Positions 6,317 to 40,765 of a DNA stretch of 64,000 nucleotides are shown here, in pieces; position 1 is the first letter of the stretch; every line of letters begins with the position of its first letter. The position numbers and the translations under genes are program-made. The stretch lies in IMG/VR virus record IMGVR_UViG_3300036944_001289, positions 145,283 through 209,282 of that record; one strand, 5' to 3'. The notes beneath the pieces are model-generated. The model saw only the letters and a list, made by a program, of their open reading frames with translations, made no database searches and was not told the origin of the DNA.

Positions 6317-6880
6317 GTGAAGTTCTCTACATATTACAAATTGGATGAGTCTCTCAAGACTAAACTAAAAGCATTAGGATTAGCAGGTCTAGCTGCTTTA
6401 ACACCTTACACTAAAGCTTCAGATATGAGTGTAAATTTTCAGATGCCTGCAACTATCGCACAGTCGCAACGTAATAGGACGGCTTCCAAAACTGCGACAG
6501 ATATAGATATTGTTGCTGCTACGTTATATAAGGAAGCTAGAGGTGAAGGTAAGAAAGGTATGGAGGCTGTAAATGAGGTTATACATAATAGATCTAAAAA
6601 GAAAAAAAAATCTCTATCTCAAATATGTACTGAACCTAAGCAATTCTCATGCTGGAATAATATAGCACCTACAAAAGATGTTATAGACTCTATTGCTAAA
6701 AAAGATCCAAAAAGTTTTTCAATAGCTAAGAAAATTGCATCTGATGATTTAACAAACCATACTAAAGGTGCTGAGTATTACCATACACTAGCTGTAAAGC
6801 CAACGTGGGGACCAAAACTAAAGAAAAGCGGCTACCAAACAGTAATTATAGGTAATCACATTTTTTATTATAAAAAGTAG
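6317..6880 (+). CDS. Cell-wall hydrolase SleB/Hydrolase_2
   Basis: EARGE catalytic Glu, V..VI.NR, QFSCWN, T.GA.YYH, IGNHIFY. Confidence 0.9.
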   Translation: MKFSTYYKLDESLKTKLKALGLAGLAALTPYTKASDMSVNFQMPATIAQSQRNRTASKTATDIDIVAATLYKEARGEGKKGMEAVNEVIHNRSKKKKKSLSQICTEPKQFSCWNNIAPTKDVIDSIAKKDPKSFSIAKKIASDDLTNHTKGAEYYHTLAVKPTWGPKLKKSGYQTVIIGNHIFYYKK

Positions 6881-6881
6881 A

Positions 6882-7109
6882 CTACTTTTTCTTCTTCTTT
6901 CTAGGTAATCTGAATGTTACTGTAGATATAGATGGATTTAGTCTATCACCTTTAAATCCACTGTACGCAGAGGGTGTAGACTTATTACCAATAAGAGGGT
7001 TCACAGTACCATGATTAGGCATATTAGGAACCTTTACAGGTCTTTTTGTATCTATAGGTGCTCTAAAACCACCCTCCAATAGAAATTTAACTAATTTATT
7101 GAACCCCAT
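6882..7109 (-). CDS. Small late protein with internal-protein-like leader
   Basis: TATAAATA upstream; MGFNKLVKFLLE leader. Confidence 0.55.
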   Translation of the reverse strand: MGFNKLVKFLLEGGFRAPIDTKRPVKVPNMPNHGTVNPLIGNKSTPSAYSGFKGDRLNPSISTVTFRLPRKKKKK

Positions 7110-7132
7110 ATTATTATTTATATAATAACAGA

Positions 7133-7495
7133 ATGACTAAAACTAAAACTTTAACCTGCGTAGTTACAGGAAGTACTACTGTTTACTCAGGTGAATTCCT
7201 TGCAAAGAAAATTGAAGAGTATGGTTCTGAAGAAAACTTAGAAAAACGATATATTTGTAAAGAAGTAAAAAGCTTTCTTAAAAAGAGATATAAGATTAAA
7301 GATATTAGAAAAGTATTATCTGTGGATGATAAGATACCACTACCTGATAATGAAACTCTGGTCTTTTTAGAAATGAATTTTAATAGCAGTATTAATACTG
7401 AGAACTCAGCATCTACAACAATAACAGAATTTACATACAATAAGTCAGATAAAGATGTTGAAGAATTTATCAACAAGTATATAATTCAAAAATGA
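7133..7495 (+). CDS. Hypothetical protein (paralogue of 60046..60354)
   Basis: Shared TC..(S/T)G...GS.E.L.K.Y N-terminus. Confidence 0.6.
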   Translation: MTKTKTLTCVVTGSTTVYSGEFLAKKIEEYGSEENLEKRYICKEVKSFLKKRYKIKDIRKVLSVDDKIPLPDNETLVFLEMNFNSSINTENSASTTITEFTYNKSDKDVEEFINKYIIQK

Positions 7496-8013
7496 TACCT
7501 ATATCTTTAGTAGATACACCTGTTAATGTGGAGGAATTTAAAATTTTAACACCAGCAGAAACTAAGTACGCGCTCTTTTTAGGATTTATTATTCGTAATG
7601 AATATGATAACAAAAGGCTAAAAATAGCTGAAAATTTTAAGCCGGTAAAGTTTTTACATGTAAAAAGAAAAGATAATCAAATAACAGAGTGTATACCATT
7701 GTATGGTGTATTATTAACACCTAATAGTGCTATTGTAAACTTAATGAAGACAGTGCGATCACAAGAAAAAGTAAAAGAAATGCCGCTTATAACATACAGA
7801 AACATACTTTCTCAGTATAATTTTTCATGTGATAATACATATTCATTATACAGCGATATGATATACCCAATTGATTTCACAAATTTAAAATCAGTTTGCG
7901 ATGATACATTTAACGAAGATAAAAAAGTATTTCAACACCTACTATCATTAGATGAAAAACATTTTGATTTCCAATCTTTTGCATCATTGAAATTATTAAT
8001 TCTTAACATATAA
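7492..8013 (+). CDS. Hypothetical protein
   Basis: ATGA-coupled ORF. Confidence 0.6.
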   Translation: MIPISLVDTPVNVEEFKILTPAETKYALFLGFIIRNEYDNKRLKIAENFKPVKFLHVKRKDNQITECIPLYGVLLTPNSAIVNLMKTVRSQEKVKEMPLITYRNILSQYNFSCDNTYSLYSDMIYPIDFTNLKSVCDDTFNEDKKVFQHLLSLDEKHFDFQSFASLKLLILNI

Positions 8014-8038
8014 TAGCAGATAAATAATAATCTAATTT

Positions 8039-9010: not shown

Positions 9011-9013
9011 TTT

Positions 9014-10660: not shown

Positions 10661-10667
10661 CAATAAT

Positions 10668-10702: not shown

Positions 10703-10703
10703 A

Positions 10704-11063: not shown

Positions 11064-11081
11064 ATAATCTATTTATTAGTT

Positions 11082-13367
11082 TCACTTACGTTCGTTGTGT
11101 ATACCTTCAGATACTGATCGTTGTGACCCATCGTTTAATTCTTTAGCAGCAACTCTTACAGCATCATTAGTTGCGAGTAATGTGAGAGGTAAGTTTGCAA
11201 ATGCATGAGAATGCGGATAACATTCAATTATATTAGTACCCGTACTGGTATATTCCAATGTTGCAGGACTTCCGTTTATTTTAACATTTACTACTGTACC
11301 TGTAACAAATTTACCAAATAGTGTAACTTGTTCAGTCACCTGATATTCCTTAGGTGCTGTTATATGCTGTATGTAAGTTTCACCTTCTACGTGTAGACCT
11401 CCACCAATAATAACATTATTATTAACACCGAGACTTTCGTTTATTAGTACTTGTCTTTGATTTTTATTTCTTAATCTTAGGATTTCAGCAGATATGTTAA
11501 TTGTTTTTGCATCTATATTAATTTCATTAGATGATGCAATATTTACTTGCTCGCCTACTATATTAGTAACAGTGCCTGTTATGTTAGTTTGTCCAAGAGA
11601 TTTAATATTGATGCCGCCAGCACCTACTAAAACGTTCATTCTATTACATGCTGTTATCGTATAATTACCACCTGGTAAGTCTTGCACGTGTACCAACTCT
11701 ACTAATGGACTCTCTTTTTTGTTTACATATACACCAAAATCATCAACAAGTACTTCATTGCTTAACATTTTACCGATACCATCGTATCGTATACTACCGA
11801 AATCATTAAACGTTAAACCTATAGTTTCAATTTTATGCTTGGCAATTTGCGATATCTCACTACCACCAACACCAAGTTGTTTTTCTATTTCTGTTAGCTG
11901 TTGTATATTAAGTTCTATTAACTGGTTTAAAATATCTTTTTGATCTTCTACATCCCAATTACCACCTTGTGAAGATGTGCTCTTACCTACACCACCAGGT
12001 CCCCATTCAGTGTTAGATTCAGCAAGATATCTTGAAGTAGGTGGTAATGATCTATCAACAGTAGAACCTAAATTATTATTAATATTATAAGCACCGTCAG
12101 ATGATGCATTTGTTGTTGTGTTATATGTGTCAAATGATTGACTACCTGTAATAGTATCATACGTTACTGATCCATCTGTTACTGGATGTGCAGCAAAAGC
12201 ACCTGATCTTGTTTGCAGTAAACTATTACGTTTTAGTCTTATATTACCGTCTGCATCTAAAACGTTATTATTATCCGTACGCTTAATTTCAAATAGTTGC
12301 TTATTTTCATGTATTATAGCATAAGTTAGTTTCCACTGATCAAATAGTTCACTATTTAATAACCCGACTTTTTTATACTTATCACGCATTACTATTTCAT
12401 CTAAGCTCTTACCGGTATATACATTATTAAAACCTCTTACCGTTTCATACTGATCATTTAGTACTAGCTTTTGGCTATTCTTTGTAGCGAGCTCTATATT
12501 AGATTGATTATTAAATTCTTTAAACGACCCTGAAAAATGCGTAAACTTTAACTTCTCATTTAAGTCTGTATTAACAACCTCTATAGTACCACCTTTTTGA
12601 TTTATAACAAATTTATTTCTGTACGTATCTACATTATTATTATATTCGGTTTGTATCTTATTTTCGAAACTACCAGGGTAATCTATACCACCATTTTCAG
12701 AATTAAAAATTCCCTGCCAATCTATATTACCGTATGTTGTGGCAAAATAAATAGGTGCTGTAGGGTTACCATCTCTGAAAAATACCCATACATGTGAACC
12801 TACACTTGGTATAGCGAAAGAGCCTTTTGCTTTATTAGAATATGATGAAGGTAAATACTCGTAAGATAAAGGATTAGGTCTATTAATATTATTTGAAGCA
12901 GAATCAAACGCGTCTTGAAGTCTATATGTTTGATCTTCGTAGAAAGCAGCAGGTTTCCCAGGTATATCTTTTGAGTCAATATCTGGCGATAGCTGATCTG
13001 CAAAATTAGAGTCCGAAGTAGTACCTACTTGCCTTGTATTATTATACCTACCACTAGTGTTCTCACCTACTAATGGGCATGCACATTCTGCCCAAGGTAA
13101 TATACGTTTTAATTCTTCAGCAACGTTTATGATTGTAGAACTAGTCGAAGATTCACCACCTGTCTCTGTTTGTTGCTTTAATATCTGTGTTAGTACAGAT
13201 TGTATATTATCACCTAAAAACTTAAATGATTTATTAGTTTTCTGTTGTATCCATCTTTCGTACACAGTAGGTGAAATATAAGGTATGAATACCTTAACTT
13301 TACCTGATTTGTCTGGATCGTTATTTTGTATAACTATACCTACATGATTGCCGTAATATTTTTTCAT
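11082..13367 (-). CDS. Baseplate hub/puncturing protein (T4 gp5/VgrG-like)
   Basis: GIV..NNDP...G.VKV.IP OB-fold, LPWA, P.VGSHVWVFF.DG...PIY, beta-helix region, C-terminal HSH. Confidence 0.8.
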   Translation of the reverse strand: MKKYYGNHVGIVIQNNDPDKSGKVKVFIPYISPTVYERWIQQKTNKSFKFLGDNIQSVLTQILKQQTETGGESSTSSTIINVAEELKRILPWAECACPLVGENTSGRYNNTRQVGTTSDSNFADQLSPDIDSKDIPGKPAAFYEDQTYRLQDAFDSASNNINRPNPLSYEYLPSSYSNKAKGSFAIPSVGSHVWVFFRDGNPTAPIYFATTYGNIDWQGIFNSENGGIDYPGSFENKIQTEYNNNVDTYRNKFVINQKGGTIEVVNTDLNEKLKFTHFSGSFKEFNNQSNIELATKNSQKLVLNDQYETVRGFNNVYTGKSLDEIVMRDKYKKVGLLNSELFDQWKLTYAIIHENKQLFEIKRTDNNNVLDADGNIRLKRNSLLQTRSGAFAAHPVTDGSVTYDTITGSQSFDTYNTTTNASSDGAYNINNNLGSTVDRSLPPTSRYLAESNTEWGPGGVGKSTSSQGGNWDVEDQKDILNQLIELNIQQLTEIEKQLGVGGSEISQIAKHKIETIGLTFNDFGSIRYDGIGKMLSNEVLVDDFGVYVNKKESPLVELVHVQDLPGGNYTITACNRMNVLVGAGGINIKSLGQTNITGTVTNIVGEQVNIASSNEINIDAKTINISAEILRLRNKNQRQVLINESLGVNNNVIIGGGLHVEGETYIQHITAPKEYQVTEQVTLFGKFVTGTVVNVKINGSPATLEYTSTGTNIIECYPHSHAFANLPLTLLATNDAVRVAAKELNDGSQRSVSEGIHNERK

Positions 13368-18603: not shown

Positions 18604-20058
18604 TTAGAAGTAAACTGACTGATTGCCAGGTGTGAATGCCTGACCGAGTCCGCTTACTATAATAACGTGGTAGTAGAGGTTTGCGCCGAAAATGTTGTCT
18701 ACAACACCGTAACGGGTTAATAGACCAACACGTGGTGCAAAGTCGTTCTGACCAATGGTGCGTTGTACCATAACAGGTATGTATGGGCAGTAGATGATAC
18801 CGGTATCGTAGAATTCTGGACCCTTGTAGCCAAGTAGTGCATATTCTGGACGATTTGTAGTATCAACGTATTGACCTTCTGTTCTGGTGTCTCTGTAAAC
18901 CTGGAAACGACCACCAAGGCTACCTACCTTAGCAACACCGACTGGCTGTGTGTTAACATTGCCTTGAACTGGTACCCATTGGAATTCAGGTAGCATTTCA
19001 AGGATTGCGCAAACGCGAGGTGTTGCAACAATGAAGTTTGCAGCGCCACGACGATTACGTACAGCAATACGGTTAGCTTCGATAATTAGTCTTTGATAGA
19101 AGTCACGGTTACGTTCGACCAACCAACGGCCATCTGCTGAAGCAGGAGACCAGATAGAATAACCAACGCCAGCACCTGCATTGAGGGCGACTTGGATCAT
19201 TCTAATAATCATTTCACGGTCGATTTCGGCCTGAATTTCATAGCTCATAGCGTTTGTTAATTCAGTGTCGATATCAATACCGTTCATGTTCTTGAGGTCT
19301 TGCTCAAGCTCTACGGACCAGCGGGCGCCTAAGCGTCTTGTACCAGCTTCAACAGCAGTCTTTTCAAATGAAACTTCAAATGTCGGAATGTTTTCCGAGA
19401 TTTCAAAGCTTGATAGAAGAGCTGCTACACCGTTATTTTGACCGTTATTAATAAAATTAACGGGCAATGCAGAGCTACCAGAAAGGTAGGCTGCGGATGT
19501 ACCGGTGTAAGCACTGTTAAGGTACTGATAGCCTGCTTCCTGACCAGCTGCAGAGGTAAGAATACCAGACTGACCGGCAGGAGCGTTGCCATTAGAACCT
19601 AAAGTGCTACCTGTGTAGCGATAACGAAGAGCGAATGCGAGACCTACTGGACCAGCCATTGGTTGAACGCCGACAATTTCGTTAGAGATAAGCTCTGGGA
19701 AAGTACGGCGGATCATGGGGATCAAGATTTTTGGAAGACGGTAGTCACCAGGTGCGTATGTATCTGTACCAGGTGTACCGGTAGAGTTCCATGAGTTCAT
19801 ACCTGCTGTGCCACCAACTGCACCACCGAAACCGGCAGTATTAACTGTACCGGATGGGTTGTAGTTAGGACCAGCTTCGTTAACCATACACCATTGCTCT
19901 TGGTTTTCCAATAGCATTGCTGTATTTAAACGGGTGTGGTTGTCTTCAATCGGAGCAACGTTCTTAGAAGAGTAATCCAAAACTGGACCCCACTTCTCAA
20001 GAAGCGCCTTTGCTCTTGATTCATTGATATATGCTTGTGTAGGACGAATAGTGTTCAT
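18604..20058 (-). CDS. Major capsid protein (T4 gp23-like)
   Basis: LLENQ, RR.FP.LI..EIVGVQPM.GPVGL.FALR, AEIDRE, IYCPY.P, TRYG. Confidence 0.97.
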   Translation of the reverse strand: MNTIRPTQAYINESRAKALLEKWGPVLDYSSKNVAPIEDNHTRLNTAMLLENQEQWCMVNEAGPNYNPSGTVNTAGFGGAVGGTAGMNSWNSTGTPGTDTYAPGDYRLPKILIPMIRRTFPELISNEIVGVQPMAGPVGLAFALRYRYTGSTLGSNGNAPAGQSGILTSAAGQEAGYQYLNSAYTGTSAAYLSGSSALPVNFINNGQNNGVAALLSSFEISENIPTFEVSFEKTAVEAGTRRLGARWSVELEQDLKNMNGIDIDTELTNAMSYEIQAEIDREMIIRMIQVALNAGAGVGYSIWSPASADGRWLVERNRDFYQRLIIEANRIAVRNRRGAANFIVATPRVCAILEMLPEFQWVPVQGNVNTQPVGVAKVGSLGGRFQVYRDTRTEGQYVDTTNRPEYALLGYKGPEFYDTGIIYCPYIPVMVQRTIGQNDFAPRVGLLTRYGVVDNIFGANLYYHVIIVSGLGQAFTPGNQSVYF

Positions 20059-28519: not shown

Positions 28520-29053
28520 TTATATAAGATAAATAGCGCTTGTGCTATCTACAAAAACATTATTATCGTTATCTACACATATGCTTAATAAAGACTCTGG
28601 CGTTAGGAATAACGATCTACCATCTGGTCTTCTATATGTAAAAGATGATACGGGTCTAATATAGGTTATTATTAATGGTGTTGTTACAGATATTACAGTA
28701 CTATTTGAAGATAAATATGGTGAAAATAACGTTTTAGAGCTCTCTGAGTACCCAGCAACATTATATGGTATGAATTGTATATCACAATCACCTATTAATC
28801 TAGGTACATTTATTAAAATATTATTTTTGTCTATAACAGTATAATCAACTAAAGAACCTGTAATAGGCTGCTGTCTTTTGAATATGTTTATACTAGTTAG
28901 TGATGGTAAAGAAAATGTATCGTTACTCGATAACATAACATTTAAAAGCTTATCAAAATTATATCCCTGTAAACCTACAACACTTAAATTATTTGTGTTT
29001 GTGGTTAACGTATCGTATAATTTTATACCATCGACTGTAATGCTGGTTATCAT
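28520..29053 (-). CDS. Hypothetical structural protein
   Basis: ATG 29053 overlaps gp15 stop (ATGA). Confidence 0.55.
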   Translation of the reverse strand: MITSITVDGIKLYDTLTTNTNNLSVVGLQGYNFDKLLNVMLSSNDTFSLPSLTSINIFKRQQPITGSLVDYTVIDKNNILINVPRLIGDCDIQFIPYNVAGYSESSKTLFSPYLSSNSTVISVTTPLIITYIRPVSSFTYRRPDGRSLFLTPESLLSICVDNDNNVFVDSTSAIYLI

Positions 29054-29808
29054 GGATTTGCTGATACTCCTACAAATTCCGTTTCTGTTAAAATACCTGT
29101 AGATACAGGCCATGTATAGGTATTACCTGAGAGACTATCATAGGTTGTTATCCTACTCTCAACATTAAAATTATTATTAATATAATATATTAATCCTTTT
29201 GGATTTTGCTGAGTCTTAAACAACCAACCTTTTATCGTAAAAGACGTGTCAGCTGTACATCTATATTTATCGGTACTTGAGATATCTGTAGGGTATGATA
29301 ATGCAATACCACCTTCCCAGAGAACTTCGCTTCTTATTTCTTGATTTAATGATAGACCTAAATCCTCTGGTACCTTCCAACCTATTATAATGTATGGATT
29401 AGCATAAGGTACAAAGTTACTTAGTATTTGATCCATGTCTGTCTGATATTTTGTTATTATCGACATACTTACACTTATATTAATAGGTACAGGTGATAAA
29501 AGATGAGATACACTATTTTGAGTACCATCGTTTTTACCATAATAGAAACCATCAAGTTTATTGAAAACTCTATTAACATCCCTAGATATATTTGTTATAG
29601 ATACAGATACTACTGGTAGTGTTAAGTTTTTAGCTTGGTTTATTATATCATATAATACACGCTGTTTAGGTGCATATACATATCTTACTTCAATTGACTG
29701 TTCTGTTTTTCTTTCTCTATTATATCGCTGAATTACAGTATCGTCAAACGCAGCAATAAACTGCGTTATAAGATCTTTTACTTCGAAAAAATACGTTTTT
29801 GATTTAAT
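29050..29808 (-). CDS. Tail terminator/completion protein (T4 gp15-like), probable ATT start
   Basis: Frame open 114 codons above track ATG: YFFEVKDLITQFIAAFDD, YVYAPKQR, LTLP, ISRD..R.FNK; AGGAGG 6 nt before ATT. Confidence 0.8.
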   Translation of the reverse strand: MKSKTYFFEVKDLITQFIAAFDDTVIQRYNRERKTEQSIEVRYVYAPKQRVLYDIINQAKNLTLPVVSVSITNISRDVNRVFNKLDGFYYGKNDGTQNSVSHLLSPVPINISVSMSIITKYQTDMDQILSNFVPYANPYIIIGWKVPEDLGLSLNQEIRSEVLWEGGIALSYPTDISSTDKYRCTADTSFTIKGWLFKTQQNPKGLIYYINNNFNVESRITTYDSLSGNTYTWPVSTGILTETEFVGVSANP

Positions 29809-29831: not shown

Positions 29832-30224
29832 TTAGTTATAATGCTTTAATAGAGTCGCAAGCATTTCCAGTTTTGTTGTAATCTGACTATATTTTTTAAG
29901 CTTCTTCATTTCGGATACAGAATCAACAGTTTTATCTATCAAATTTTTTAGTTGATTTTTAGTCATCTTACCGTATCCTTTTACCATAATTTCTTCACTT
30001 TCACTAAACGAACCTGATGCTCCTGGAATACCTGCAGTGTTTGTTTTAGCTGAATTACCTGGTAAGTTACTAGTACTGTTAGCATTAGCGTAGCTGTTCT
30101 TTACGTCAGATGTTGGCATATTATTATGTGCTTGATTTTTTTGCTGTGTATCAGCAATAGCCCACATATTGAGACCGCTTTCATACAACATACCTATCTG
30201 CTTTATGTCATTAAGTTTATCCAT
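29832..30224 (-). CDS. Hypothetical late protein
   Basis: TAAATA upstream; LYE|S-type leader. Confidence 0.6.
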   Translation of the reverse strand: MDKLNDIKQIGMLYESGLNMWAIADTQQKNQAHNNMPTSDVKNSYANANSTSNLPGNSAKTNTAGIPGASGSFSESEEIMVKGYGKMTKNQLKNLIDKTVDSVSEMKKLKKYSQITTKLEMLATLLKHYN

Positions 30225-32092: not shown

Positions 32093-32093
32093 T

Positions 32094-33725
32094 ATGAGTA
32101 ATATTTTAGAAGACTATCACATATACACAAGATATACTAATAACCTCATTCTTGAGTTTAATGAAGCTACGCTTAAAAAATTGAGCGTAACATACAAGAA
32201 AGAGAGACCAGAACTAACTGATGATGCTATAACAGCATACTTAGAGGCATATGAACAACTAAAAAACACTCCTAGGTTTATTGGTGTAGTTAATAGATTT
32301 TATCCTAAAATTAAAAACCCTAAGGATATATATTCATTCACTTGGGAGCAACTTGAACAGGTAATAGATAGTTTAAAAGATATTCAGATAAGTACCGATA
32401 CTAAAGTCGATAGTACTAAGTATAAAGAAATTTACGAAGACGATACAATAAAGATAATTCTAGGTAGAGATGCAGAAGAGTGGATATATATTCGTAATAC
32501 ATTATTACCAGCGTTACCACCATTTAAGGGTTCTTCATGGTGTATAGGCAACCCCGGTGGTAGTAATATGTATTACTCTTATAGAATTAAAAAGTTAAAT
32601 CAATATTCACCAGAACAATTCTGGTCACAATATCTTATTCATAGCAAAGTACCTACACCTTCTCCTAAGTATCAAAATGCAGTATTGATGATATCACAAG
32701 ATGGTGAGTATTATTTAACTTCTCAAGATAACAGGGATGATACACGCATGGAATGGAGCAGGGTAATACATCTTATACCTGCATTAAAAAATAAAGAGAA
32801 GTATATAAAATTTATACCATTATCGAAAAAAGAACAAGAAGAATATGCTGTCACAAAAGCTACACCGGAAAGTTTTGACAAACTAAGATATAGAGCAAAA
32901 CAGGTATATTGTCAAGTAGGTAAGCCATTATTTATAAAAGATTTTATAAACATGGATAAAGATCTACAAACCATGTACATAAATGGTAGATTTGATAGAG
33001 GTGGTTTTTCTCTGTACAATAAAAGTACATACGATTCATATAGTAAAAATCTATTTGCAATTCCTGGACCCAAAGAGATAGATTTACCTCAAGGTAATAT
33101 TCAATCACCTGAGTTTGTAGAGCGACTTAACAGCCTACTTGGAGATATTTCTATAGAAGATAAGTTTAGTATCTATAAACAACTCTTGTTTTATATATCA
33201 CCTGAGCTTAAAAACTTTCCTCAAGCAATACAAACATTCTGCAGACAATGTGAGAAGTATTTACCTGCATTAAAAAATACACTACTTTCAAAACTTATAT
33301 CAGAGTATAATATTAAAAATTTCAAAACATTACCAGATATGATAAAGTATACACTTTGCGAACTGCCTCAAATTTTCATAACAAGTTCTGATTTTATAAA
33401 CCTACCTGAAAAATCACAAAATAACTATATTAATAGTAGAAAAACGTTAAGACATTTAGTGTATTTATTTTTTACACCTAAGATGATAAAAAAGATAGAA
33501 TCTCTAAAACCATCTGAAATTAATGAACAAGCAATTACAAATATATGGAAAAATAACTCTGTAACATATAGACAAGTTATTGATATGGCTACAAGAGAAG
33601 GACAAAAACAAAAAGGTAAAGGGATTACATATTTGTTAAACTTCAATAATTTGAGCGGTGATATACCTGTACGAAAATTATACGCTTCAAAAGTCTTAGA
33701 AAAGATTAAAGAAGAAAACGAATAA
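32094..33725 (+). CDS. Hypothetical protein (SWCI..NMYYSYR domain)
   Basis: 543-aa ORF; ILE| leader. Confidence 0.6.
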   Translation: MSNILEDYHIYTRYTNNLILEFNEATLKKLSVTYKKERPELTDDAITAYLEAYEQLKNTPRFIGVVNRFYPKIKNPKDIYSFTWEQLEQVIDSLKDIQISTDTKVDSTKYKEIYEDDTIKIILGRDAEEWIYIRNTLLPALPPFKGSSWCIGNPGGSNMYYSYRIKKLNQYSPEQFWSQYLIHSKVPTPSPKYQNAVLMISQDGEYYLTSQDNRDDTRMEWSRVIHLIPALKNKEKYIKFIPLSKKEQEEYAVTKATPESFDKLRYRAKQVYCQVGKPLFIKDFINMDKDLQTMYINGRFDRGGFSLYNKSTYDSYSKNLFAIPGPKEIDLPQGNIQSPEFVERLNSLLGDISIEDKFSIYKQLLFYISPELKNFPQAIQTFCRQCEKYLPALKNTLLSKLISEYNIKNFKTLPDMIKYTLCELPQIFITSSDFINLPEKSQNNYINSRKTLRHLVYLFFTPKMIKKIESLKPSEINEQAITNIWKNNSVTYRQVIDMATREGQKQKGKGITYLLNFNNLSGDIPVRKLYASKVLEKIKEENE

Positions 33726-33738: not shown

Positions 33739-33987
33739 ATGGCAAAATTTGACGACTTAATAAAGCACATACTTAGTGAATCACCAGCACCTGCTATTAC
33801 ACCAGAAAAACCTACAGTAAAACCTGGCACAAAACCAGAAACACCAAGTAAACCATCTAAACCAGAACATCCTTTTGCACCTAAACCAGGTATAAAACCA
33901 CGCCCTGATGCAAAGAAGAAATCACGTGAAGAGAATGAAGAAAATGCTGATGTTAAGTTATTTTTATCACACCGTCGTAAAAAATGA
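33739..33987 (+). CDS. Pro/Lys-rich protein with internal-protein-like leader
   Basis: MAKFDDLIKHILSE; KP repeats. Confidence 0.6.
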   Translation: MAKFDDLIKHILSESPAPAITPEKPTVKPGTKPETPSKPSKPEHPFAPKPGIKPRPDAKKKSREENEENADVKLFLSHRRKK

Positions 33988-35141
33988 AATTTAATAAAAA
34001 AATATTCGAAGCTATAGATAAAGGTGATGCACCTAATCTCTTTCACAGTGATAAAGAGAAAAAATATAAACCATCTTTAGATGTAGAGAAGTTAATGCCT
34101 TCTCTATCTCAAAAAGAATCAAATTACATAGAAACAGTTACAAGTGCATCATATAAAAAGGCAATTGAAAGATTAAGAAATTATACCGGGTTAAATCCGG
34201 CTAGGACAGGTCTACCGCAACTACTAACAGTTGCAATGAGTGCTATACCTAAGATACAGCAGGTACAACACGCACACAAACAACATCTTGAAAAATTAGC
34301 AGTAGATACAGTTTTAAGTCTTCCAGAATTTGAGTTTTTTAAGCACATGATTGATCGTGGTCAGCTTAAAATAGTTGCTAAATTAGAGCAAGCAGATTTA
34401 AGTAATGCTATTACAAAAGAGGATCTTGAAAATAAAGAAGAAGAACCTGAAGAGGGCGAACTAACTAATGCTGAAGAAATTACATTAAACCTGGCCGTAG
34501 ATCTCGGAGATGCAAGCGATGATAAGTTAAAATGGAAGTTTGCAAATATGTTAAAACAAGGAAATGCATTTAATAAGACATACTTGTTTAATATGGTTTC
34601 TGATGAACTAAATAAAATAGATCCAAACTTAGTAAAATTATATGGCACATTATCATCAGTAATACAAGTTGCATACTATGCAATGCCTGATATACCTCTT
34701 AATATGCGTTCATCAGAATCTGAAATGGGTTCATCTGAAGTTGTTCCAGAAGACGATATTTATACTGTATATGCTTTATCACCTTTCTTTCCGGTATTGA
34801 TACATGAGATTGTAAAGGGGTTGTGGACATATCTAACCATGTCACTTGTAGGTCAAGGAGAACATGATGAAAGAACAATAGACGATGAAACTGTTGAGTT
34901 AATGACTGGACCTGAATTATACGCAAAATTCGTTGAGTTTATACCTTTCAAAGATTCAAAATATCTACCTCAGACAGTAATGCAATTAATAAAGACAAAT
35001 AAGATTGCTGATGTTCTAGGTGGTGGTGATAAAGCTAAATCAGCTGTATATACAGCTTTAGATCAGGTAAAACAAATAATGGCAGAGTACGAAGATCAAA
35101 TGGACGACTTTAACGGTGATAAATATAAGGATATAGAATAA
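33984..35141 (+). CDS. Large-phage hypothetical protein (FP.LIHEI.KG motif)
   Basis: 385-aa ORF; MKFNKKIFE leader. Confidence 0.6.
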   Translation: MKFNKKIFEAIDKGDAPNLFHSDKEKKYKPSLDVEKLMPSLSQKESNYIETVTSASYKKAIERLRNYTGLNPARTGLPQLLTVAMSAIPKIQQVQHAHKQHLEKLAVDTVLSLPEFEFFKHMIDRGQLKIVAKLEQADLSNAITKEDLENKEEEPEEGELTNAEEITLNLAVDLGDASDDKLKWKFANMLKQGNAFNKTYLFNMVSDELNKIDPNLVKLYGTLSSVIQVAYYAMPDIPLNMRSSESEMGSSEVVPEDDIYTVYALSPFFPVLIHEIVKGLWTYLTMSLVGQGEHDERTIDDETVELMTGPELYAKFVEFIPFKDSKYLPQTVMQLIKTNKIADVLGGGDKAKSAVYTALDQVKQIMAEYEDQMDDFNGDKYKDIE

Positions 35142-35525
35142 ATGGAAAATATTTTTCTTACACAATATATAAATGAAGCTTTTGATACAAAATCTTTAGC
35201 AGCTCATAGAAAAAGTCTAATATCTAAATACGGTAAAAAGGGTACGACAAGTGTAAAAGACGTAATAATAACTCCAGAGAAATTACAAATGCTCAAGACT
35301 ATCAGAAATGATATGGGATTATTTAATGAAGGTGAGCCTGCACCAGCTTGGAATAGTTTTACAGCAGCGCTACTAAACAATATAAAAACCAATCCAGTTT
35401 TTGTTAAGAAGATGCTATCTAACGAGCAAACAGCTAAAAAATTTATAGCGTCCTTTATATTAAAGTTTAGACGCGAAATTGAAAGTACTTCCAGCTACCT
35501 TAGCGAAAAATTAAAGACTGGTTAA
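35142..35525 (+). CDS. Hypothetical protein with INE|A leader
   Basis: ORF adjacent in operon. Confidence 0.55.
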   Translation: MENIFLTQYINEAFDTKSLAAHRKSLISKYGKKGTTSVKDVIITPEKLQMLKTIRNDMGLFNEGEPAPAWNSFTAALLNNIKTNPVFVKKMLSNEQTAKKFIASFILKFRREIESTSSYLSEKLKTG

Positions 35526-36329
35526 GTCGTTATACATTTGTATATCTTCTGTACTATACTGCTTAGTTAGTTGCTTAAACTCACCAGGTAATATTTGTTT
35601 ACCATCAATGTAATACTCCATAATATCAGGTAGAACTGAGCCTGATGGACTAGTCATACCATAAAAATTAATTATAATGGCAGGGCCTGTTAGACGGTGA
35701 AGCTGACCGTGTTTTAACCACTTTGTTTCCTTAGTTTTACTAAAAGAAGAAGGCTGTAAGATATAAGCAGGTTTATCATCTTCTCTGTGTAATCTATTTT
35801 GAGGATCACGATACTGTATAAGTTCTCTATTGCTGGCTGTTATAGAAGTTTGTTTCTTGTATTGTAACTTACCTTCAATATAAAAATCTTCATCTTTAAA
35901 CTTACCGCTTCCTTGTGAAATATATACATTTGCAGGTCCACCTATACGGTGATACTTGCCATTTTTGTACCATTCTTGTGATTCTATCTTACCATTTTTT
36001 ATAGTAGTTTTAGCAGGGCCATTCTCCCTGTTCAACTTACCGTGTGTATACCAAGCTTCAATATGATGTATATTGGGATACTCTTGTATAATCTCATTAA
36101 GATTTAACTCTAGAGACCATTCATTATCAGTTAAAATCATAGCAGGTCCATCATCTCTATGTAATCTACCTTGTTTATCTCTCCATGATTTTCTGGTATA
36201 TACTTCGTCGAATGCTGAACTATCTCTTTTAGATACGTGTGTTCGAGTAGTTTTCTCTACATCAGTAGGTGGTATAAGATACTTACTCTTAAGGCCTTCC
36301 TGTAAATAAAATTTTTTAAACGATAACAT
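35511..36329 (-). CDS. HRxDGPA repeat protein
   Basis: Five HR..GPA-type repeats; family C-terminal tag. Confidence 0.75.
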   Translation of the reverse strand: MLSFKKFYLQEGLKSKYLIPPTDVEKTTRTHVSKRDSSAFDEVYTRKSWRDKQGRLHRDDGPAMILTDNEWSLELNLNEIIQEYPNIHHIEAWYTHGKLNRENGPAKTTIKNGKIESQEWYKNGKYHRIGGPANVYISQGSGKFKDEDFYIEGKLQYKKQTSITASNRELIQYRDPQNRLHREDDKPAYILQPSSFSKTKETKWLKHGQLHRLTGPAIIINFYGMTSPSGSVLPDIMEYYIDGKQILPGEFKQLTKQYSTEDIQMYNDLTSL

Positions 36330-36706
36330 TACGAATTAAGGTCGTTTAGTATATCAAGATCTTCATCAGTGTAATCTTTAGCTGCTTGAGATACTTCATT
36401 AGGTAAGACTTCTTTACCTTTAATATAGTATTTCTTCTCGATGAGAGAACCGTCTTGATCATACTCTTCTAAAGCAGGACCTTTTATATTGTGTAATTGA
36501 CCATCTCTATAATGAGATATAAGTTTAGGCTTACCATCTTTATAGAATAGCTCTACAGCAGGACCACTCTCATTATGCAGTACTTTAGTACTTGGCTTAA
36601 AAACGACATTAACACCTACTACACCATTACCCCAATTTAAAGTGTAAGCATTACTACCAGTCTCAGACATTTCATTTAAGATTTCTAGAAGAGCGTTGAA
36701 ATTCAT
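36329..36706 (-). CDS. HxxxGPA repeat protein (2 repeats)
   Basis: LHNESGPA, LHNIKGPA; tag. Confidence 0.75.
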   Translation of the reverse strand: MNFNALLEILNEMSETGSNAYTLNWGNGVVGVNVVFKPSTKVLHNESGPAVELFYKDGKPKLISHYRDGQLHNIKGPALEEYDQDGSLIEKKYYIKGKEVLPNEVSQAAKDYTDEDLDILNDLNS

Positions 36707-36723
36707 ATGTTAATATTTATTAT

Positions 36724-37272
36724 TTATGAATTTAAGTCATCTAAGATATCTAAGTCTTCTTTATCATATTGCTTAGTTAGCTGTTTAAATTCATTTGGTG
36801 TTAGTTCTTTACCATCTATATAGTACTCTTCTTCTATTTTATCACCATTTTGATTCCACACTTGACTAGCAGGACCATCTAAGCGATGAAGCTTGCTATC
36901 TTTATACCATTCTTCACTTCGCCTTTTACCATTTTTATGCCATGATTGATAAGCAGGTCTATCTAACCTATAACGTTTATTATCTCTAAACCATTCTTCA
37001 ATATGTTTTTGACCATCTATATACCACAGTTGAACAGCAGGACCATCTAAGCGATGAAGCTTGCTATTCTTAAACCACTCTTCAAATTCTTTTTGACCAT
37101 TTTTATACCACCATTGACGAGCAGGACCATCTAATCTATGAAATTCACCATCTTTAAGCCATTCTTCAGACTTAAGCTTTGTATCATCCTCATCCCAATA
37201 CGTATGTATAACTTTAATATCTTGGTAATCTTCAATATTCTCTACTAATAAAATCAATTGATCAAACTTCAT
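36724..37272 (-). CDS. HRLDGPA repeat protein (4 x 28 aa)
   Basis: 84-bp repeats. Confidence 0.8.
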   Translation of the reverse strand: MKFDQLILLVENIEDYQDIKVIHTYWDEDDTKLKSEEWLKDGEFHRLDGPARQWWYKNGQKEFEEWFKNSKLHRLDGPAVQLWYIDGQKHIEEWFRDNKRYRLDRPAYQSWHKNGKRRSEEWYKDSKLHRLDGPASQVWNQNGDKIEEEYYIDGKELTPNEFKQLTKQYDKEDLDILDDLNS

Positions 37273-37280
37273 AAGATTAT

Positions 37281-37904
37281 TTATGAATTTAAGTTATCTA
37301 ATATATCCATATCTTCTTTATCGTATTGCTTAGTTAGTTGTTTAAGCTCATTTGGTGGTATTTCTTTACCGTTTATATAGTACTCTTCAATCATCTTTTG
37401 ACCATCTTCATCCCACTCTTGACTAGCAGGACCATCTAAGCGATGAAGCTTGCTATCTTTATACCATTCTTCAAATTCTTTTTGACCATTTTTATACCAA
37501 TCTTGACGAGCAGGTCCATCTAAGCGATGAGGTCTACCATCTATATAGTACTCTTCAATCATCTTTTGACCATTTGTATACCAGTATTGACGAGCAGGTC
37601 CATCTAATCTATGAAATTCATCATCTCTAAACCATTCTTCAATATATTTTTGACCATCTATATACCACAGTTGAACAGCAGGACCATCTAAGCGATGAAG
37701 CTTGTTATCTTTATACCATTCTTCAAATTCTTTTTGACCATTTTTATACCACCCTTGACGAGCAGGACAATCTAATCTATGAGGTTTACCATCTTTATAC
37801 CAATACTCCTCCTTAGGTTTTGTCTCAGCATCATCCCAGTACACTCTTTCAACTCGAATATTTTCATTATCTTCTGCTAATAAAACTAAATCTTTAAACT
37901 TCAT
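37281..37904 (-). CDS. HRLDGPA repeat protein (5 x 28 aa)
   Basis: 84-bp repeats sharing DNA blocks with neighbour. Confidence 0.8.
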   Translation of the reverse strand: MKFKDLVLLAEDNENIRVERVYWDDAETKPKEEYWYKDGKPHRLDCPARQGWYKNGQKEFEEWYKDNKLHRLDGPAVQLWYIDGQKYIEEWFRDDEFHRLDGPARQYWYTNGQKMIEEYYIDGRPHRLDGPARQDWYKNGQKEFEEWYKDSKLHRLDGPASQEWDEDGQKMIEEYYINGKEIPPNELKQLTKQYDKEDMDILDNLNS

Positions 37905-38059
37905 AAGATTATTTATAAGAAAACCTCTCTTTATATTTTTACGCCGCCCAAAAATTCCCGAAAGGCGTAATACTATCTATATTACCGAAAGTTCCGGGCC
38001 CTATATAGCGTTTCTATTTTTCTGCGCGCGTCGCGAGAATTTCCGAGGGTTCCGAGCTT

Positions 38060-38154
38060 TTTATGGTTCCGAGCGCTCTCTGCGGCGAATATAGAATTTC
38101 CCGCGACTTTTGCGGCGAGAATAGCGCTATTTATGGTTCCGAGCGCTCTCTGCG
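38060..38154. repeat. 25-bp direct repeat x2 in GC-rich non-coding patch
   Basis: TTTATGGTTCCGAGCGCTCTCTGCG at 38060 and 38130. Confidence 0.85.
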
Positions 38155-38555
38155 CAGAGAATTGGGCATGGGGCTCATTATACGAAAGTTCCTTTAACTA
38201 ATAAGTGAAAACTCCTTTGCCCTGGTCTCTGAAACCTTTTTATATGAAAACCTTTTTTGAACTAGAGGTTCCGACTTTTCCGAAAAAAGTTATCTGCGAT
38301 ATAACCACTATCTTTTCTGAAAAGGTTCCTTTTATGCAGCCAAAGGAACATCTATATAATTAATGTAACTATTTATTATGAAGCGACAACCATTAGCTTA
38401 TCCGAAATGTATAATATGAAATATTCTTTTAGGAGTTATATATCAAAGCTTTTCTGAAATGTATAATATGAAGATAGTATATAGCAGTTTCTGAAAAGTA
38501 TAATATGAAGACCAATTAAGGCTACAAATAATATGCAGCCCTAATAAGTGCTAAC

Positions 38556-38750
38556 TTATCCTTTATTACATTCTTCCCAACAAGTTAGCTCATCCTCGTT
38601 TTCTAATATTAATACCAGATCTTTTAAGTCATCAATTAGTTGTTGCAAATCTATTTTATCTTTAATGGCGTCTTCCTTTAATAGAGGATGCCCTTTAACA
38701 GGTTCTTTTTCTAGATATTTCTTTGCAAGTTCTAAATGTTTATTTGTCAT
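38556..38750 (-). CDS. Hypothetical protein
   Basis: Short ORF between iteron blocks. Confidence 0.45.
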   Translation of the reverse strand: MTNKHLELAKKYLEKEPVKGHPLLKEDAIKDKIDLQQLIDDLKDLVLILENEDELTCWEECNKG

Positions 38751-38986
38751 AATAATTAGGGTGCATAATAAGTATATACTTGTTCCATCCTATAAAGTGA
38801 AACATTATTATATGAAACCATTATTTAATACCGTTTCAGAAACGCTCTTATATGCAAAAGAGGTGATCAACCGTTTCAGAAAAGTATTATATGAAATATG
38901 TACTAGAGCGGTTTCTGAAAGCTACAAGAGGATATCAGATCAACAAACTTTTCAGAAATAAACGGATTTGAAAAATGAGTGAGAAA

Positions 38987-39025
38987 ATAATAGTAGGCTG
39001 CTTATATTAAGCAGCCTACTATTAT
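38987..39025 (-). terminator. Long hairpin/terminator
   Basis: ATAATAGTAGGCTGCTTA/TAAGCAGCCTACTATTAT. Confidence 0.65.
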
Positions 39026-39036
39026 GCTAATTACTT

Positions 39037-39399
39037 TTAGTCAATGCTGGGTTCTGAATCTTCGTCATCCGAATCCATATCTTCATCTTCTACATCCTCC
39101 ACCATATCATTCTTCTTAACCTTACCTGCCGCAATCAAACGACGCGCTTCCTTTTGCGCCTCCTTAAACTCTTCATACTTAGCCTTGCGACGAGCCTCCT
39201 TTTCCTCAGCCTCAATCTTATTCTTAGCTTCCGCTGCCAATTCCATCTCTTCCATATGCTGAATGGCCGCATCCAAAATTGCGGTCATCGTATCTTTTTC
39301 CGTCAAGTTAAGCTTCTTGCGGATTTCGATAATGCGATTCTTATCGGCTTCATGGAGTAGAGCTGCGGTGAACTTGGCTGGCACTTTTAGGGTCTTCAT
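39037..39399 (-). CDS. Putative RHH-like DNA-binding protein with acidic tail (paralogue of 48718)
   Basis: AKFTA beta strand, helix-helix, coiled coil. Confidence 0.5.
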   Translation of the reverse strand: MKTLKVPAKFTAALLHEADKNRIIEIRKKLNLTEKDTMTAILDAAIQHMEEMELAAEAKNKIEAEEKEARRKAKYEEFKEAQKEARRLIAAGKVKKNDMVEDVEDEDMDSDDEDSEPSID

Positions 39400-39453
39400 T
39401 TTAGTAGTTAGTTTGTTGTTGTTGTTAATAAGGGCTCTATCGGCCCTACATTT

Positions 39454-39469
39454 ATATTACTAAAGTTCC
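39454..39469 (-). promoter_or_regulatory. GGAAC-N5-TAnnAT phage promoter
   Basis: GGAAC TTTAG TAATAT. Confidence 0.65.
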
Positions 39470-39914
39470 GTTGTAAGAGTTGAAGGAGGATCCGAGGAAA
39501 AATAAGTCCTAAGCTTTTCAGAAAAGTAAAAAATGCAAGCCGCACTTTTCTGAAAAAATAGAATACACCTTTCATACCTGACTTTTCTGAAAAGCTTTGA
39601 ATGCTGCTTCCAATTCGTAAACCACTTTTCGAGGAACTTTGATATTATAAAGTTTAAGGGTCTATATTTTTCCTGTATACTATTTCAGTTCCTGCGTTTC
39701 GTACGCATTAAAATGCAAGGCTTTATATGATACTAATATAAAAGAAGCTTACAAGTACGCAGGAACAAGTACTTGTGCCTAGTAAGCAGGAACTGGAACA
39801 GAGTACTATATAGCCGTACTAAGAATCGGAACAATAAGAAAGGAGAGCCGCATAAAGCAGACTCTCCTTGTTCCTATATACTAGCTAACTAAAACTGTTC
39901 CTAGATACTATTGA

Positions 39915-40097
39915 TTACTTACTAATCTTATCATCGACCTTATTTGAGAAGTATAGCATGATATAACCGAATACTGCCATCTTAATGATTACTAGTACTT
40001 GCATTACTAGAGTAGTTTGTTGCTTGAATGTAGCTCCTTCTAAGATAGCCAGTATTAGAAAGAATAGTGTTAGTAGTAGATTGATAGCTGTACGCAT
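39915..40097 (-). CDS. Small 2-TM membrane protein
   Basis: Two hydrophobic helices. Confidence 0.45.
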   Translation of the reverse strand: MRTAINLLLTLFFLILAILEGATFKQQTTLVMQVLVIIKMAVFGYIMLYFSNKVDDKISK

Positions 40098-40228
40098 ATA
40101 GTATGATCTAATATGTATATGAGGTTCTTATATCCAAGAATAACAATGTGTTTCGGGGCTCTCAGAGCGCTGTTTGTCTCTGAGAGCTGGGCGGGGCTAT
40201 GATATCAGTGAGTGGGTTCTGTGAATGG

Positions 40229-40765
40229 TTAACTCATCTCGTCTAACCAGTTTTTGTAATAGGCTCTACCAGCTTTTGCTGCATTTGGACCACCTATAAA
40301 TAGTGTTAACCCACCTGAACCTACTACGAAACGTGGACCTCCACTTTGTTTATACAAAATCTCAGTGCAAGCCAAAATTGTAAGCTTACCACTAGCAATT
40401 GAATTAAAGAATGATAATGGATCATCCACGAGTGTGATGTCTTTTGTTTTGAATACTCCTTTAGCAATAGCATCTTCGATAGTTAATTTAGCCTCGTCTG
40501 CATCTGGACCTGGTTTACCAGTGTCGACGAATTCATAAGGCATATGTAGCATAAGGTCTTCAAACCCATAATTAGTGTAGATGTCTGAATTATTATCTTC
40601 TGGTAAAATTATAAAACAGGTTGGATCATCACCAAGACTATCATAGTTATCTTCGCACCTTACTACCGCGTTAGCTACTTTTGTTCCGTAGTCCTCGTCG
40701 GTGTTCTCTTTATAGATAGAAGCATAAGCTTCTGAAATTAACTTATAATCATGTTTGTCTTTCAT
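40229..40765 (-). CDS. Hypothetical late protein with ISE|A leader
   Basis: TAAATA promoter; LF..GP..AK shared with 41193. Confidence 0.6.
   Translation of the reverse strand: MKDKHDYKLISEAYASIYKENTDEDYGTKVANAVVRCEDNYDSLGDDPTCFIILPEDNNSDIYTNYGFEDLMLHMPYEFVDTGKPGPDADEAKLTIEDAIAKGVFKTKDITLVDDPLSFFNSIASGKLTILACTEILYKQSGGPRFVVGSGGLTLFIGGPNAAKAGRAYYKNWLDEMS

Follow-up and report, generated by a model that had tools for sequence, protein, structure and literature searches.

Probable targeting of proteins to the phage head

The question raised by this locus is whether 12 genes in a 64,000-nucleotide stretch of phage DNA (the window) encode proteins that are addressed to the interior of the phage head by a short N-terminal peptide. 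The source genome is that of an uncultured T4-like phage of 209 kb, obtained from shale-gas metagenomes. The analysis makes it likely that most of the 12 proteins bear an N-terminal propeptide of the T4 type (a capsid-targeting leader). This would be a known mechanism met in a distant phage, and most of the bearers are probably head-internal.

According to the proposed mechanism, the leader proteins would be made late in infection and anchored by their leader on the scaffolding core during prohead assembly. A protease of the gp21 family would cut after the Glu of a hydrophobic-x-Glu site, usually before a small residue, and the mature protein would be freed inside the head, from which some of the freed proteins may exit with the DNA at infection. 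Core binding, cleavage, residence in the virion and injection are steps that we infer, and several members, encoded by conserved genes near those of portal and protease, may serve in assembly instead of being cargo.

The leader genes and their promoters

All 12 N-termini listed in the original prediction were present at ORF starts. Each of them ended in [L/I]-x-E (12/12), with the Glu at residue 9–15, and their resemblance to T4 leaders was borne out by a comparison with the T4 genome sequence itself. The leaders were mostly 11–13 residues long, and in 9–10 of the 12 a Phe or Tyr at position 3–4 was followed by a hydrophobic residue three positions on; the leaders of the genes at 29832, 35142 and 40229 fitted this spacing less well. 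Different synonymous codons were used for the residues that the leaders share, which argues for selection on the peptide.

The promoter motif agreed with the expectation that most of these genes follow late promoters: eight of the 12 have a late-type NTAAATA box that ends 5–7 nt upstream of the start codon, and the remaining four (at 22369, 33984, 35142 and 35511) abut or overlap an upstream gene on the same strand. By promoter motif, the leader genes are therefore predicted to be late, eight with their own box and four as members of operons. Across the genome, 40 genes have a late box whose end lies exactly 5 nt upstream of the start codon, and hardly any SD motifs were seen.

The number and the grouping of the genes needed some revision. 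The 12 genes are real, but they amount to only nine independent families, since four of them are MORN-repeat paralogues. Within the 29.8–38 kb proposed for a cargo set, a run of seven consecutive leader genes was seen at 33.7–37.9 kb. Upstream of the first of these, in the same operon, a 543-residue protein (32094–33725, + strand) that was outside the earlier list may have a short leader, weakly indicated by I-L-E at residue 6; its homologue in a related locus (L107) has a leader-like peptide at its start. The run also includes a basic protein of 127 residues (35142–35525, +) with a leader-like N-terminus. The least secure of the 12 is an acidic ORFan of 178 residues (40229–40765, −), which has a late box and a weak leader and for which a homologue search returned nothing. 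Most of the candidates could not be assigned to a family by PHROGs or Pfam.

Is the leader pattern more than chance?

The motif statistics depended strongly on how the leader was described. A bare [LI]xE with Glu at residue 8–16 occurred in 52 genes against about 32 expected (1.6-fold), and a loose leader pattern occurred in 20 genes against 10.5–12 expected; about half of the loose-pattern matches here are attributable to chance. The strict pattern, defined as an aromatic residue at position 3–4, a hydrophobic residue three positions later and then hydrophobic-x-E, was found in 10 of 325 genes, compared with 1.25 in shuffled sequences and 1.43 in internal windows, and none of 1000 shuffles reached 10. 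Five of these matches lay within 8 consecutive genes (permutation P<0.0002). One strict match outside the 12 was discarded as a false positive, as it represents a HAD DxDxT motif. The [LI]xE motif was also commoner among genes with a late promoter (18/55) than among the others (34/270; P=9e-4).

The residue that follows the leader Glu was not used in the selection of leaders and is therefore an independent feature. Of 32 non-redundant leaders, 10 have Ala at this position and 18 have Ala, Gly or Ser, compared with 4.8% and 15.9%, respectively, after internal sites (P about 1e-6 for the excess in leaders). As a control, the patterns were run on 61 kb of T4. The loose pattern found ipII and ipIII, missed ipI and matched five other ORFs (lysozyme e, segE, 30.1, cd.3 and gp2), while the only match of the strict pattern was lysozyme e. 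Given this control, the pattern was rejected as a stand-alone classifier. Because it is unspecific in T4, the case rests on clustering, conservation and the residue after Glu. The leader is common to nine unrelated protein families, other leader genes that are non-homologous occupy the same slot of the head module in relatives, and the cut-site signature is kept in homologues of the 385-residue, 130-residue, MORN, 82-residue and hydrolase families.

These results bear on two ways in which the shared N-termini could arise without any targeting peptide. The simpler one is chance acting on composition: the genome is AT-rich, start codons abut promoters, Lys, Phe, Asn and Ile codons accumulate behind the ATG, and the tripeptide L-x-E is common. 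The modest enrichment of the bare motif and the loose pattern, together with the false positives of the patterns in both T4 and this genome, are what such an explanation would lead one to expect. It does not readily account for a clustered set of 10 strict matches against 1.3 expected, for a site kept in homologues down to 26% identity, or for the bias towards small residues after the Glu; moreover, 37 of the 55 late genes share the same promoter arrangement and lack the [LI]xE motif. We regard this explanation as improbable. Even less probable is that the shared N-terminus acts as a signal in the RNA, for example in translating late mRNAs that are leaderless, rather than in the peptide. The fixed 5-nt distance and the scarcity of SD motifs described above would suit it, but the shared residues are written in differing synonymous codons, four leader genes lack their own promoter, the conserved Glu is encoded 27–45 nt downstream, and in fusions the same junction is retained deep inside the protein. 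A peptide leader remains the preferred reading.

The head machinery

A leader of this kind would need a matching protease and core, and the genome encodes a head set that comprises a gp21-family prohead protease, a gp22-like scaffold and a gp23-like capsid protein. The head region gave no match to cultured phages by megablast. The portal protein (24424–26193, −) was used as the anchor for the head module. The protease (Peptidase_S77; 21193–21855, −) matched PF03420 at 104 bits and PDB 5JBL at E 7e-17, and its N-terminal L-I-V-E|T/S-P was invariant across 24 relatives, similar to the L-I-E at residue 9 of T4 gp21 (PMC9026906). Between the protease and the scaffold lies a basic protein of 64 residues (20997–21191, −), which is kept in relatives.

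The gp22-like scaffold (20139–20993, −), identified by a PHROG match, contains 19 [LIV]xE sites in 284 residues, a density comparable to that of T4 gp22 (20 sites in 269 residues) and the highest of the proteome (shuffles 10.3 ± 2.6, P=0.0025). The gp23-like major capsid protein (18604–20058, −) has a conserved I-x-E at residue 13 and a conserved [L/I/M]-x-E near residue 61. The latter is followed by a variable Gly-rich linker, at a position near that of the T4 L-T-E|A cut. Predicted T4-like cut sites are retained in the capsid protein, the protease and the scaffold.

Conserved leader-bearing families

The best-supported predicted processing site is that of the 385-residue protein (33984–35141, +), which has a 9-residue leader ending in I-F-E|A. 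Among 66 homologues down to 26% identity, the column of Glu-9 is Glu in 62; of these 62, Ile or Leu stands two positions before the junction Glu in 45, and Ala follows it in 49. The part upstream of the Glu varies from 5 to 103 residues, fusions included. The AF2 model agrees with such a junction, as residues 1–9 are disordered and order begins at residue 11. An S77 protease was encoded in 4/4 records tested that carry this family. In IMG/VR the family has at least 447 relatives, in records of up to 365 kb, and gene arrays that share the leader adjoin portals in relatives. With tblastn, the protein and two distant family members matched unannotated huge-phage records only.

An invariant motif, H-E-x-x-K-G, characterises the family. 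A zincin-type metallopeptidase identity was considered and rejected, as the motif is not H-E-x-x-H. Foldseek comparison of the model with PDB gave nothing at E<=0.001, and the top rows of a wide VIA-align search were zincin-type peptidases at Z<=4.7, which is below the meaningful level and serves as a lead only.

The 82-residue Pro-rich basic protein encoded just upstream (33739–33987, +) also has a leader, and in other phages it is fused to the product of the next gene, the 385-residue protein. The 130-residue conserved protein (29832–30224, −) adjoins a gp3-like gene, and its family retains [L/I]-x-E at residues 9–15 in 39 non-redundant homologues. These three families are widely conserved and in many relatives lie beside the portal and protease genes; judged by sequence, they seem to fit conserved proteins of the head core or head interior better than a variable cargo set.

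The methyltransferase-fold protein and the MORN-repeat paralogues

Other members of the set have the appearance of folded domains. A 281-residue protein (22369–23214, −) with a leader is encoded in a variable slot of the head module. Residues 1–22 were disordered in its AF2 model, and the fold matched 304 PDB chains at E<=0.001, all of them methyltransferases, as well as ESM Atlas entries at TM 0.5–0.61, which indicates a class I SAM-methyltransferase fold. The Pfam family Methyltransf_31 was sub-threshold (E 0.045; 13.9 bits against a cut-off of 27), and G-x-G-x-G, the SAM-binding motif I, was not seen at the end of strand 1 of the sequence. Given that both motif I and a family-level match were missing, we refer to a methyltransferase-fold protein and not to a methyltransferase. 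A homologue search returned near-identical relatives only, and a 224-kb phage encodes a homologue of 24% identity whose leader is of the same type. The P1 head protein DarB contains a methyltransferase domain and offers a precedent.

The four MORN-repeat-variant paralogues, all with leaders, are encoded side by side on the minus strand and have lengths of 272 (35511–36329), 125 (36329–36706), 182 (36724–37272) and 207 (37281–37904) residues; the fold of the last resembles YwqK-type MORN_2 proteins. Pfam MORN_2 was below its cut-off (E 1e-3; 19.5 bits against 29.6), tandem repeats were obvious by eye, and structural comparison in the ESM Atlas gave TM 0.66–0.80 to MORN_2/YwqK clusters. A search with a MORN paralogue returned only weak partial matches.

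These families allow a further reading to be weighed, in which the propeptides are real yet many bearers are core or assembly proteins of the prohead, like T4 gp67, gp68 and gp22, that are degraded or retained in the head instead of being injected as effectors. We consider this a serious possibility, although somewhat short of an even one. It draws on the conservation and frequent portal–protease neighbourhood of the 385-, 82- and 130-residue families, on the short L-x-E leaders with which T4 gp67 and gp68 likewise begin, and on the small basic and Pro-rich proteins, which resemble DNA-associated internal proteins. The methyltransferase fold, the MORN repeats and the 385-residue domain are, in contrast, folded enzyme-like or repeat domains unlike scaffold, and the expansion of paralogues and the variable slot recall the plasticity seen at internal-protein loci in T-even phages (PMC3012670, PMC9026906).

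The cell-wall hydrolase and its divergent neighbour

The first of the 12 genes encodes a cell-wall hydrolase of 187 residues (Hydrolase_2; 6317–6880, +), with a GTG start and a late box 5 nt upstream. Its leader is followed by a Gly/Ala-rich, weakly hydrophobic segment and the catalytic domain. At least 10 divergent homologues retain the leader, the Glu and the hydrophobic segment, the leader ahead of this segment being conserved, acidic and 11–17 residues long. A syntenic copy is present in a related locus (L088). Transcribed divergently from the hydrolase gene is that of a very basic protein of 75 residues (pI 11.2; 6882–7109, −), which has a leader and its own late box; its positional analogue in L088 is a 115-residue basic protein, also with a leader and a late box. 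No second PG hydrolase was found in the genome among 8 common families searched, and no holin was identified.

By its sequence, the hydrolase is ambiguous between a head-delivered hydrolase and a signal-anchored endolysin. That it is the phage endolysin, exported by a signal anchor or by signal-arrest-release, with an N-terminus that only mimics a leader, seems to us an even proposition. It is the sole PG hydrolase detected among the families searched, its N-terminus runs into a weakly hydrophobic segment, other hydrolase homologues have classic signal peptides, and T4 lysozyme e itself is a false positive of the pattern. An acidic leader ending in Glu before the hydrophobic segment would, however, be unexpected on the cytoplasmic face of a signal anchor, and it is kept in the divergent homologues. 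Furthermore, Pfam detects no lysozyme domain in the gp5-like hub protein, a gap that a virion-borne hydrolase would fill, and the leader-bearing basic protein is a conserved divergent neighbour. In its Gly/Ala-rich weak membrane segment, which precedes the wall-hydrolase domain, the protein recalls both signal-arrest-release endolysins and ejected wall hydrolases of the T7 gp16 type. The present protein differs from these in its conserved acidic leader ending in Glu, and it has neither the homology nor the size of gp16.

Implications for packaged proteins

Proteins carried in the head meet the host first, together with the DNA, and anti-restriction factors are among those of T4 and P1. Should the leaders act as in T4, a simple signature would list the head-carried proteins of phages that cannot be grown, and new candidates for roles of this kind would be the MORN/YwqK-like repeats, the methyltransferase fold, the 385-residue H-E-x-x-K-G domain and the wall hydrolase. 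That the junction is so strongly conserved even between distant phages suggests that the T4 protease specificity and loading mechanism are old and widespread, in which case the leader could be attached to foreign proteins as a portable tag for loading them into other phage chassis.

A bolder and, in our view, rather unlikely extension is that the leader and its [I/L]-x-E|Ala junction form a deeply conserved loading code of a very large assemblage of uncultured T4-like and huge phages; in the present phage, the expanded YwqK/MORN set, the methyltransferase-fold protein and a head-delivered wall hydrolase would then be injected counter-defence or entry factors. The YwqK/MORN-type fold is one used by immunity proteins. 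If such a code existed, the packaged proteome could be read directly from genome sequences.

Comparison with known systems

The T4 capsid targeting sequence was reportedly the subject of work by Mullaney and Black in 1996. Ten leader residues are enough for packaging in T4, with residues 4 and 7 acting in targeting and residues 8 and 10 in processing (PMC9026906), and most leaders described here have aromatic or hydrophobic residues in a T4-like spacing. They resemble those of T4 IPI, IPII, IPIII and Alt, in which a short leader has aromatic or hydrophobic residues about three apart and ends in L/I-x-E, often before Ala; in the T4 sequences, E|A cuts are found in ipI, ipII, ipIII, gp23 and gp67. 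The unrelated bodies, the genes predicted to be late and the gp21-family protease are further likenesses to the T4 internal proteins, whose function has been described (PMC9026906, PMC3012670, PMC5694885). The differences are that no homologous body was found here, that the leaders are mostly longer than the 10 residues of ipII and ipIII, and that the bearers, predicted from sequence, include conserved multi-phage families, a four-member MORN expansion and a methyltransferase fold.

The short L-x-E leaders are also reminiscent of the T4 prohead core proteins gp67, gp68 and gp22 and of gp21 self-processing (gp67 at residue 6, gp21 at residue 9), as are the dense sites of the scaffold and the placement of genes in a portal-protease-scaffold-capsid module. 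Neither gp67 nor gp68 had a detectable sequence homologue here, and the module differs from that of T4 in having a 382-residue protein, a gp4-like protein and the 64-residue basic protein in the gap between protease and scaffold.

The Dar system of P1 belongs to another phage lineage, in which a signal of no more than 30 residues at the N-terminus directs the large enzyme DarB into the head, to be delivered along with the DNA (PMC9024508). DarB shows no homology to the proteins studied here, and no L-x-E cleavage of it is reported in that work (PMC9024508). A further comparison is with the inner-body and ejection proteins of phiKZ, 201phi2-1 and SPN3US, where a gp21-related protease cleaves many head proteins behind a Glu and conserved N-termini are common to paralogues (PMC5694885). 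Their sites are S/A-x-E and their propeptides mostly exceed 100 residues, whereas the leaders of the present phage have Leu or Ile two positions before the Glu and are short, as in T4.

Phage and head module

The virus record is 209,282 bp long with direct terminal repeats, and the window spans its bases 145283-209282. Runs with near-identical DNA carry the label shale gas metagenome, and no close cultured relative of the phage was found. The major capsid protein is ~34% identical to cyanomyovirus gp23 and matched T4 gp23 structures at E 3e-36. The head module is encoded on the minus strand, in the order portal (24424-26193), 382-aa protein (23236-24384), 281-aa leader protein (22369-23214), gp4-like head-closure protein (21890-22339), Peptidase_S77 protease (21193-21855; 104 bits, PDB 5JBL at E 7e-17), 64-aa basic protein, gp22-like scaffold (20139-20993) and capsid protein (18604-20058).

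Between the portal and gp3-like genes lies a 750-aa late gene (26258-28510, minus strand) that has no counterpart among 80 related loci; its product gave only weak tail-protein and PTS-IIA-like matches. The gp3-like sheath-stabiliser gene (29050-29808, minus strand) exceeds its ATG-called ORF. Its frame is open from 29808 and aligns with relatives from their residue 1, with an apparent ATT start five bases 3' of a strong SD, among the genome's few. Three tRNA genes (Arg-TCT, Leu-TAA, Met-CAT) were located within 50426-53582 (minus strand).

Occurrence of the leader

All 12 peptides of the original prediction were identified as ORF N-termini, and each terminates in L/I-x-E, the final Glu falling at residue 9-15. 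Promoter motifs agree with the late promoters claimed for most of these genes: in 8/12, a late-type NTAAATA box has its end 5-7 nt upstream of the start codon, and the other four genes directly follow or overlap the upstream gene.

Genome-wide statistics were calculated on 325 ORFs from a simple caller. The bare tripeptide ([LI]xE, Glu at 8-16) was mildly enriched, with 52 genes against ~32 expected, and was commoner among late-promoter genes (18/55 vs 34/270 others, P=9e-4). A loose leader pattern occurred in 20 genes (10.5-12 expected), and the strict pattern, comprising an aromatic residue at 3-4, a hydrophobic residue three later and hydrophobic-x-E, in 10 genes (1.25-1.43 expected), a count reached in 0/1000 shuffles. 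The strict matches were clustered, five lying within eight consecutive genes (permutation P<0.0002). The match at 61123-61674 was rejected as a false positive, being a HAD-type D-x-D-x-T active site. More leader-like ORFs lie outside the window, at whole-genome positions 38960-39148, 39677-40009, 72396-73010, 83197-83388, 94073-94498, 126812-126973, 131315-132505 and 136716-137231. Some have late boxes, two encode very small basic proteins, and 83197-83388 has most of its leader in common with that of the hydrolase gene.

As a control, T4 genes were read from NC_000866. T4 ipII and ipIII have a common 10-residue leader ending I-A-E, then Ala; ipI opens with a heptapeptide much like theirs, followed at residue 19 by I-T-E then Ala. 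Comparable sites are present in gp67 (L-I-E, residue 6), gp24 (L-R-E, residue 10), Alt (I-T-E, residue 6), gp21 (L-I-E, residue 9) and gp23 (L-T-E, residue 65). Applied to 99 T4 ORFs, the loose pattern recovered ipII and ipIII, missed ipI and also picked gp2, lysozyme e, segE, 30.1 and cd.3, while lysozyme e was the sole strict match. The pattern was thus rejected as a stand-alone classifier, and the case for the leader must therefore rest on other evidence.

One line of such evidence is the residue after the Glu, a feature outside the leader selection criteria. Ala directly follows the Glu in 10/32 non-redundant leaders, against 4.8% after internal sites, and Ala, Gly or Ser in 18/32 against 15.9% (P about 1e-6, a somewhat generous test as some of the 32 leaders are related). 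Mutual homology among the 12 is limited to four genes at 35511-37904; the other eight lack pairwise similarity. The shared residues are encoded by differing synonymous codons, which argues against an RNA-level signal or a recombination remnant.

The 385-aa family

Judged from sequence, the 385-aa protein (33984-35141) is the strongest single case for a functional leader. A word search gave 17 homologues and IMG/VR at least 447. When 66 non-redundant sequences with identities as low as 26% were aligned, the Glu-9 column held Glu in 62/66; among these 62, Ile or Leu stands two positions before the Glu in 45, and Ala directly after it in 49. The stretch upstream of this Glu varies from 5 to 103 residues, and includes 43-residue propeptides bearing further sites and fusions with a Pro-rich protein, which is a separate 82-aa gene in the window. 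A variable prefix before an invariant hydrophobic-x-Glu|Ala junction has, in these alignments, the look of a maturation cut. The AF2 model (pLDDT 78.6) showed residues 1-9 disordered and order from residue 11 on. The family often adjoins portal and protease, and an S77 protease is encoded in 4/4 records tested. Cleavage of the 385-aa protein at the predicted Glu is very likely.

The 82-aa and 385-aa genes (33739-35141) overlap by 4 nt in the window and at loci L003, L089, L090 and L107; a number of other phages (L091, L093, L096, L098, L102) have them fused, with the hydrophobic-x-Glu junction retained inside the fusion. Two further invariant features of the 385-aa family are H-E-x-x-K-G and, 27 residues downstream, a Glu. 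The top structural rows were zincin peptidases, though weak (Z<=4.7), and the protein may contain a zincin-like domain with Lys replacing the second His.

Other leader proteins

Cleavage at the predicted Glu is likely for each of the 82-aa protein, which is very basic, the 130-aa protein and the MORN set. The 130-aa protein is the product of a conserved gene adjoining the gp3-like gene, and L/I-x-E is retained across 39 non-redundant homologues. In the four MORN paralogues (35511-37904), MORN-variant repeats are flanked by a leader and an acidic C-terminal tail, both conserved. Their fold resembles MORN_2/YwqK clusters (TM 0.66-0.80), and at least three copies occur in the relative L007. The tail, of ~25 residues, is common to all paralogues here and in L007; C-terminal processing also occurs in T4 Alt and gp21 (PMC9026906).

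The 281-aa protein has a class I methyltransferase fold, with no recognisable glycine-rich SAM motif and no Pfam match above cut-off. A homologue in a 224-kb phage is 24% identical and has the same kind of leader, and cleavage is fairly probable. It is somewhat favoured for the very basic 75-aa protein, whose gene has a leader-bearing positional analogue at the distant syntenic locus L088. For the 127-aa protein, supported by just one close relative, the chances are even; for the 178-aa protein, an ORFan, cleavage is doubtful.

The gene at 6317-6880 encodes a Hydrolase_2 wall hydrolase. An exhaustive search gave at least 10 divergent homologues with the same layout of Glu-ended leader, Gly/Ala-rich weakly hydrophobic segment and catalytic domain; other homologues start with a classic signal peptide or lack one. 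A search for eight common families gave no second wall hydrolase, which favours an endolysin role. In the gp5-like baseplate hub (11082-13367, minus strand) the OB domain (Phage_base_V) was present and a lysozyme domain was not detected, which would leave room for a virion-borne enzyme. Cleavage of the hydrolase at its Glu is possible, at slightly under even chances.

Leader genes in relatives

Among the 80 related loci (portals 68-95% identical), at least eight further unrelated families carry the same leader. Within the closer subclade, the position between the 382-aa and gp4-like genes either has no gene or is taken by different leader genes. A 337-392-aa family is one such occupant, and the 281-aa protein fills the position in the window; in L007 a 321-aa MORN protein lies one slot away. 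Beside a portal gene at locus L101:1868-10158, nine paralogues and one 385-family member open with nearly the same 10-12-residue leader; that record has an S77-type protease domain within a 1549-residue open frame.

Promoters

Across the genome, the end of the NTAAATA box lies exactly 5 nt upstream of the start codon in 40 genes and 6 nt upstream in 10 (in the window, for example, at 6317, 6882, 29832, 33739, 36724, 37281 and 40229), and a -10-like box abuts 26 more starts. An SD-like motif was present in only 19/325 genes. Assuming T4 promoter geometry, this suggests that the mRNAs are largely leaderless and start at the ATG itself, whereas T4 keeps an SD between late box and ATG. The leader-gene cluster is separated from the next block by 1.1 kb without convincing genes (37905-39036), with a palindromic TTTCnGAAA box that is present five times and followed by a -10-like box, two GC-rich 29-nt repeats and a perfect 18-nt hairpin (38987-39025). 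This stretch may serve as a regulatory or promoter array, or as an origin.

Proposed processing and comparison with known systems

In T4, the first 10 residues are enough to bring foreign proteins into the head; targeting relies on residues 4 and 7, processing on residues 8 and 10, and the internal proteins are bound to the scaffolding core and released by gp21 (PMC9026906, PMC5694885, PMC3012670). The leader proteins would similarly bind the scaffolding core, and the gp21-family protease would cleave the leader, freeing proteins that would reside in the virion and could be injected into the host. Sites in the known substrates also count in favour of a functional leader. The protease N-terminus itself, L-I-V-E|T/S-P, is invariant across 24 relatives. 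In the capsid protein, [L/I/M]-x-E is retained immediately before an indel-rich, Gly-rich linker, at a position aligning near the T4 maturation cut. The scaffold has the highest [LIV]xE density in the proteome (19 sites vs 10.3 +/- 2.6 in shuffles); T4 gp22 has 20 such sites in 269 residues. The large set of injected cargo originally proposed stands in part: several leader bearers, such as the 385-aa protein with its frequent portal and protease neighbours, may belong to a conserved core and not be effectors injected into the host.

T-even phages are already known for internal proteins with leaders and for plastic loci that encode them, and phiKZ-like phages and P1 for ejection proteins with propeptides (PMC9026906, PMC5694885, PMC9024508). 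The phage described here is a distant addition to these systems, contributing comparative evidence on the breadth of junction conservation and new cargo types.
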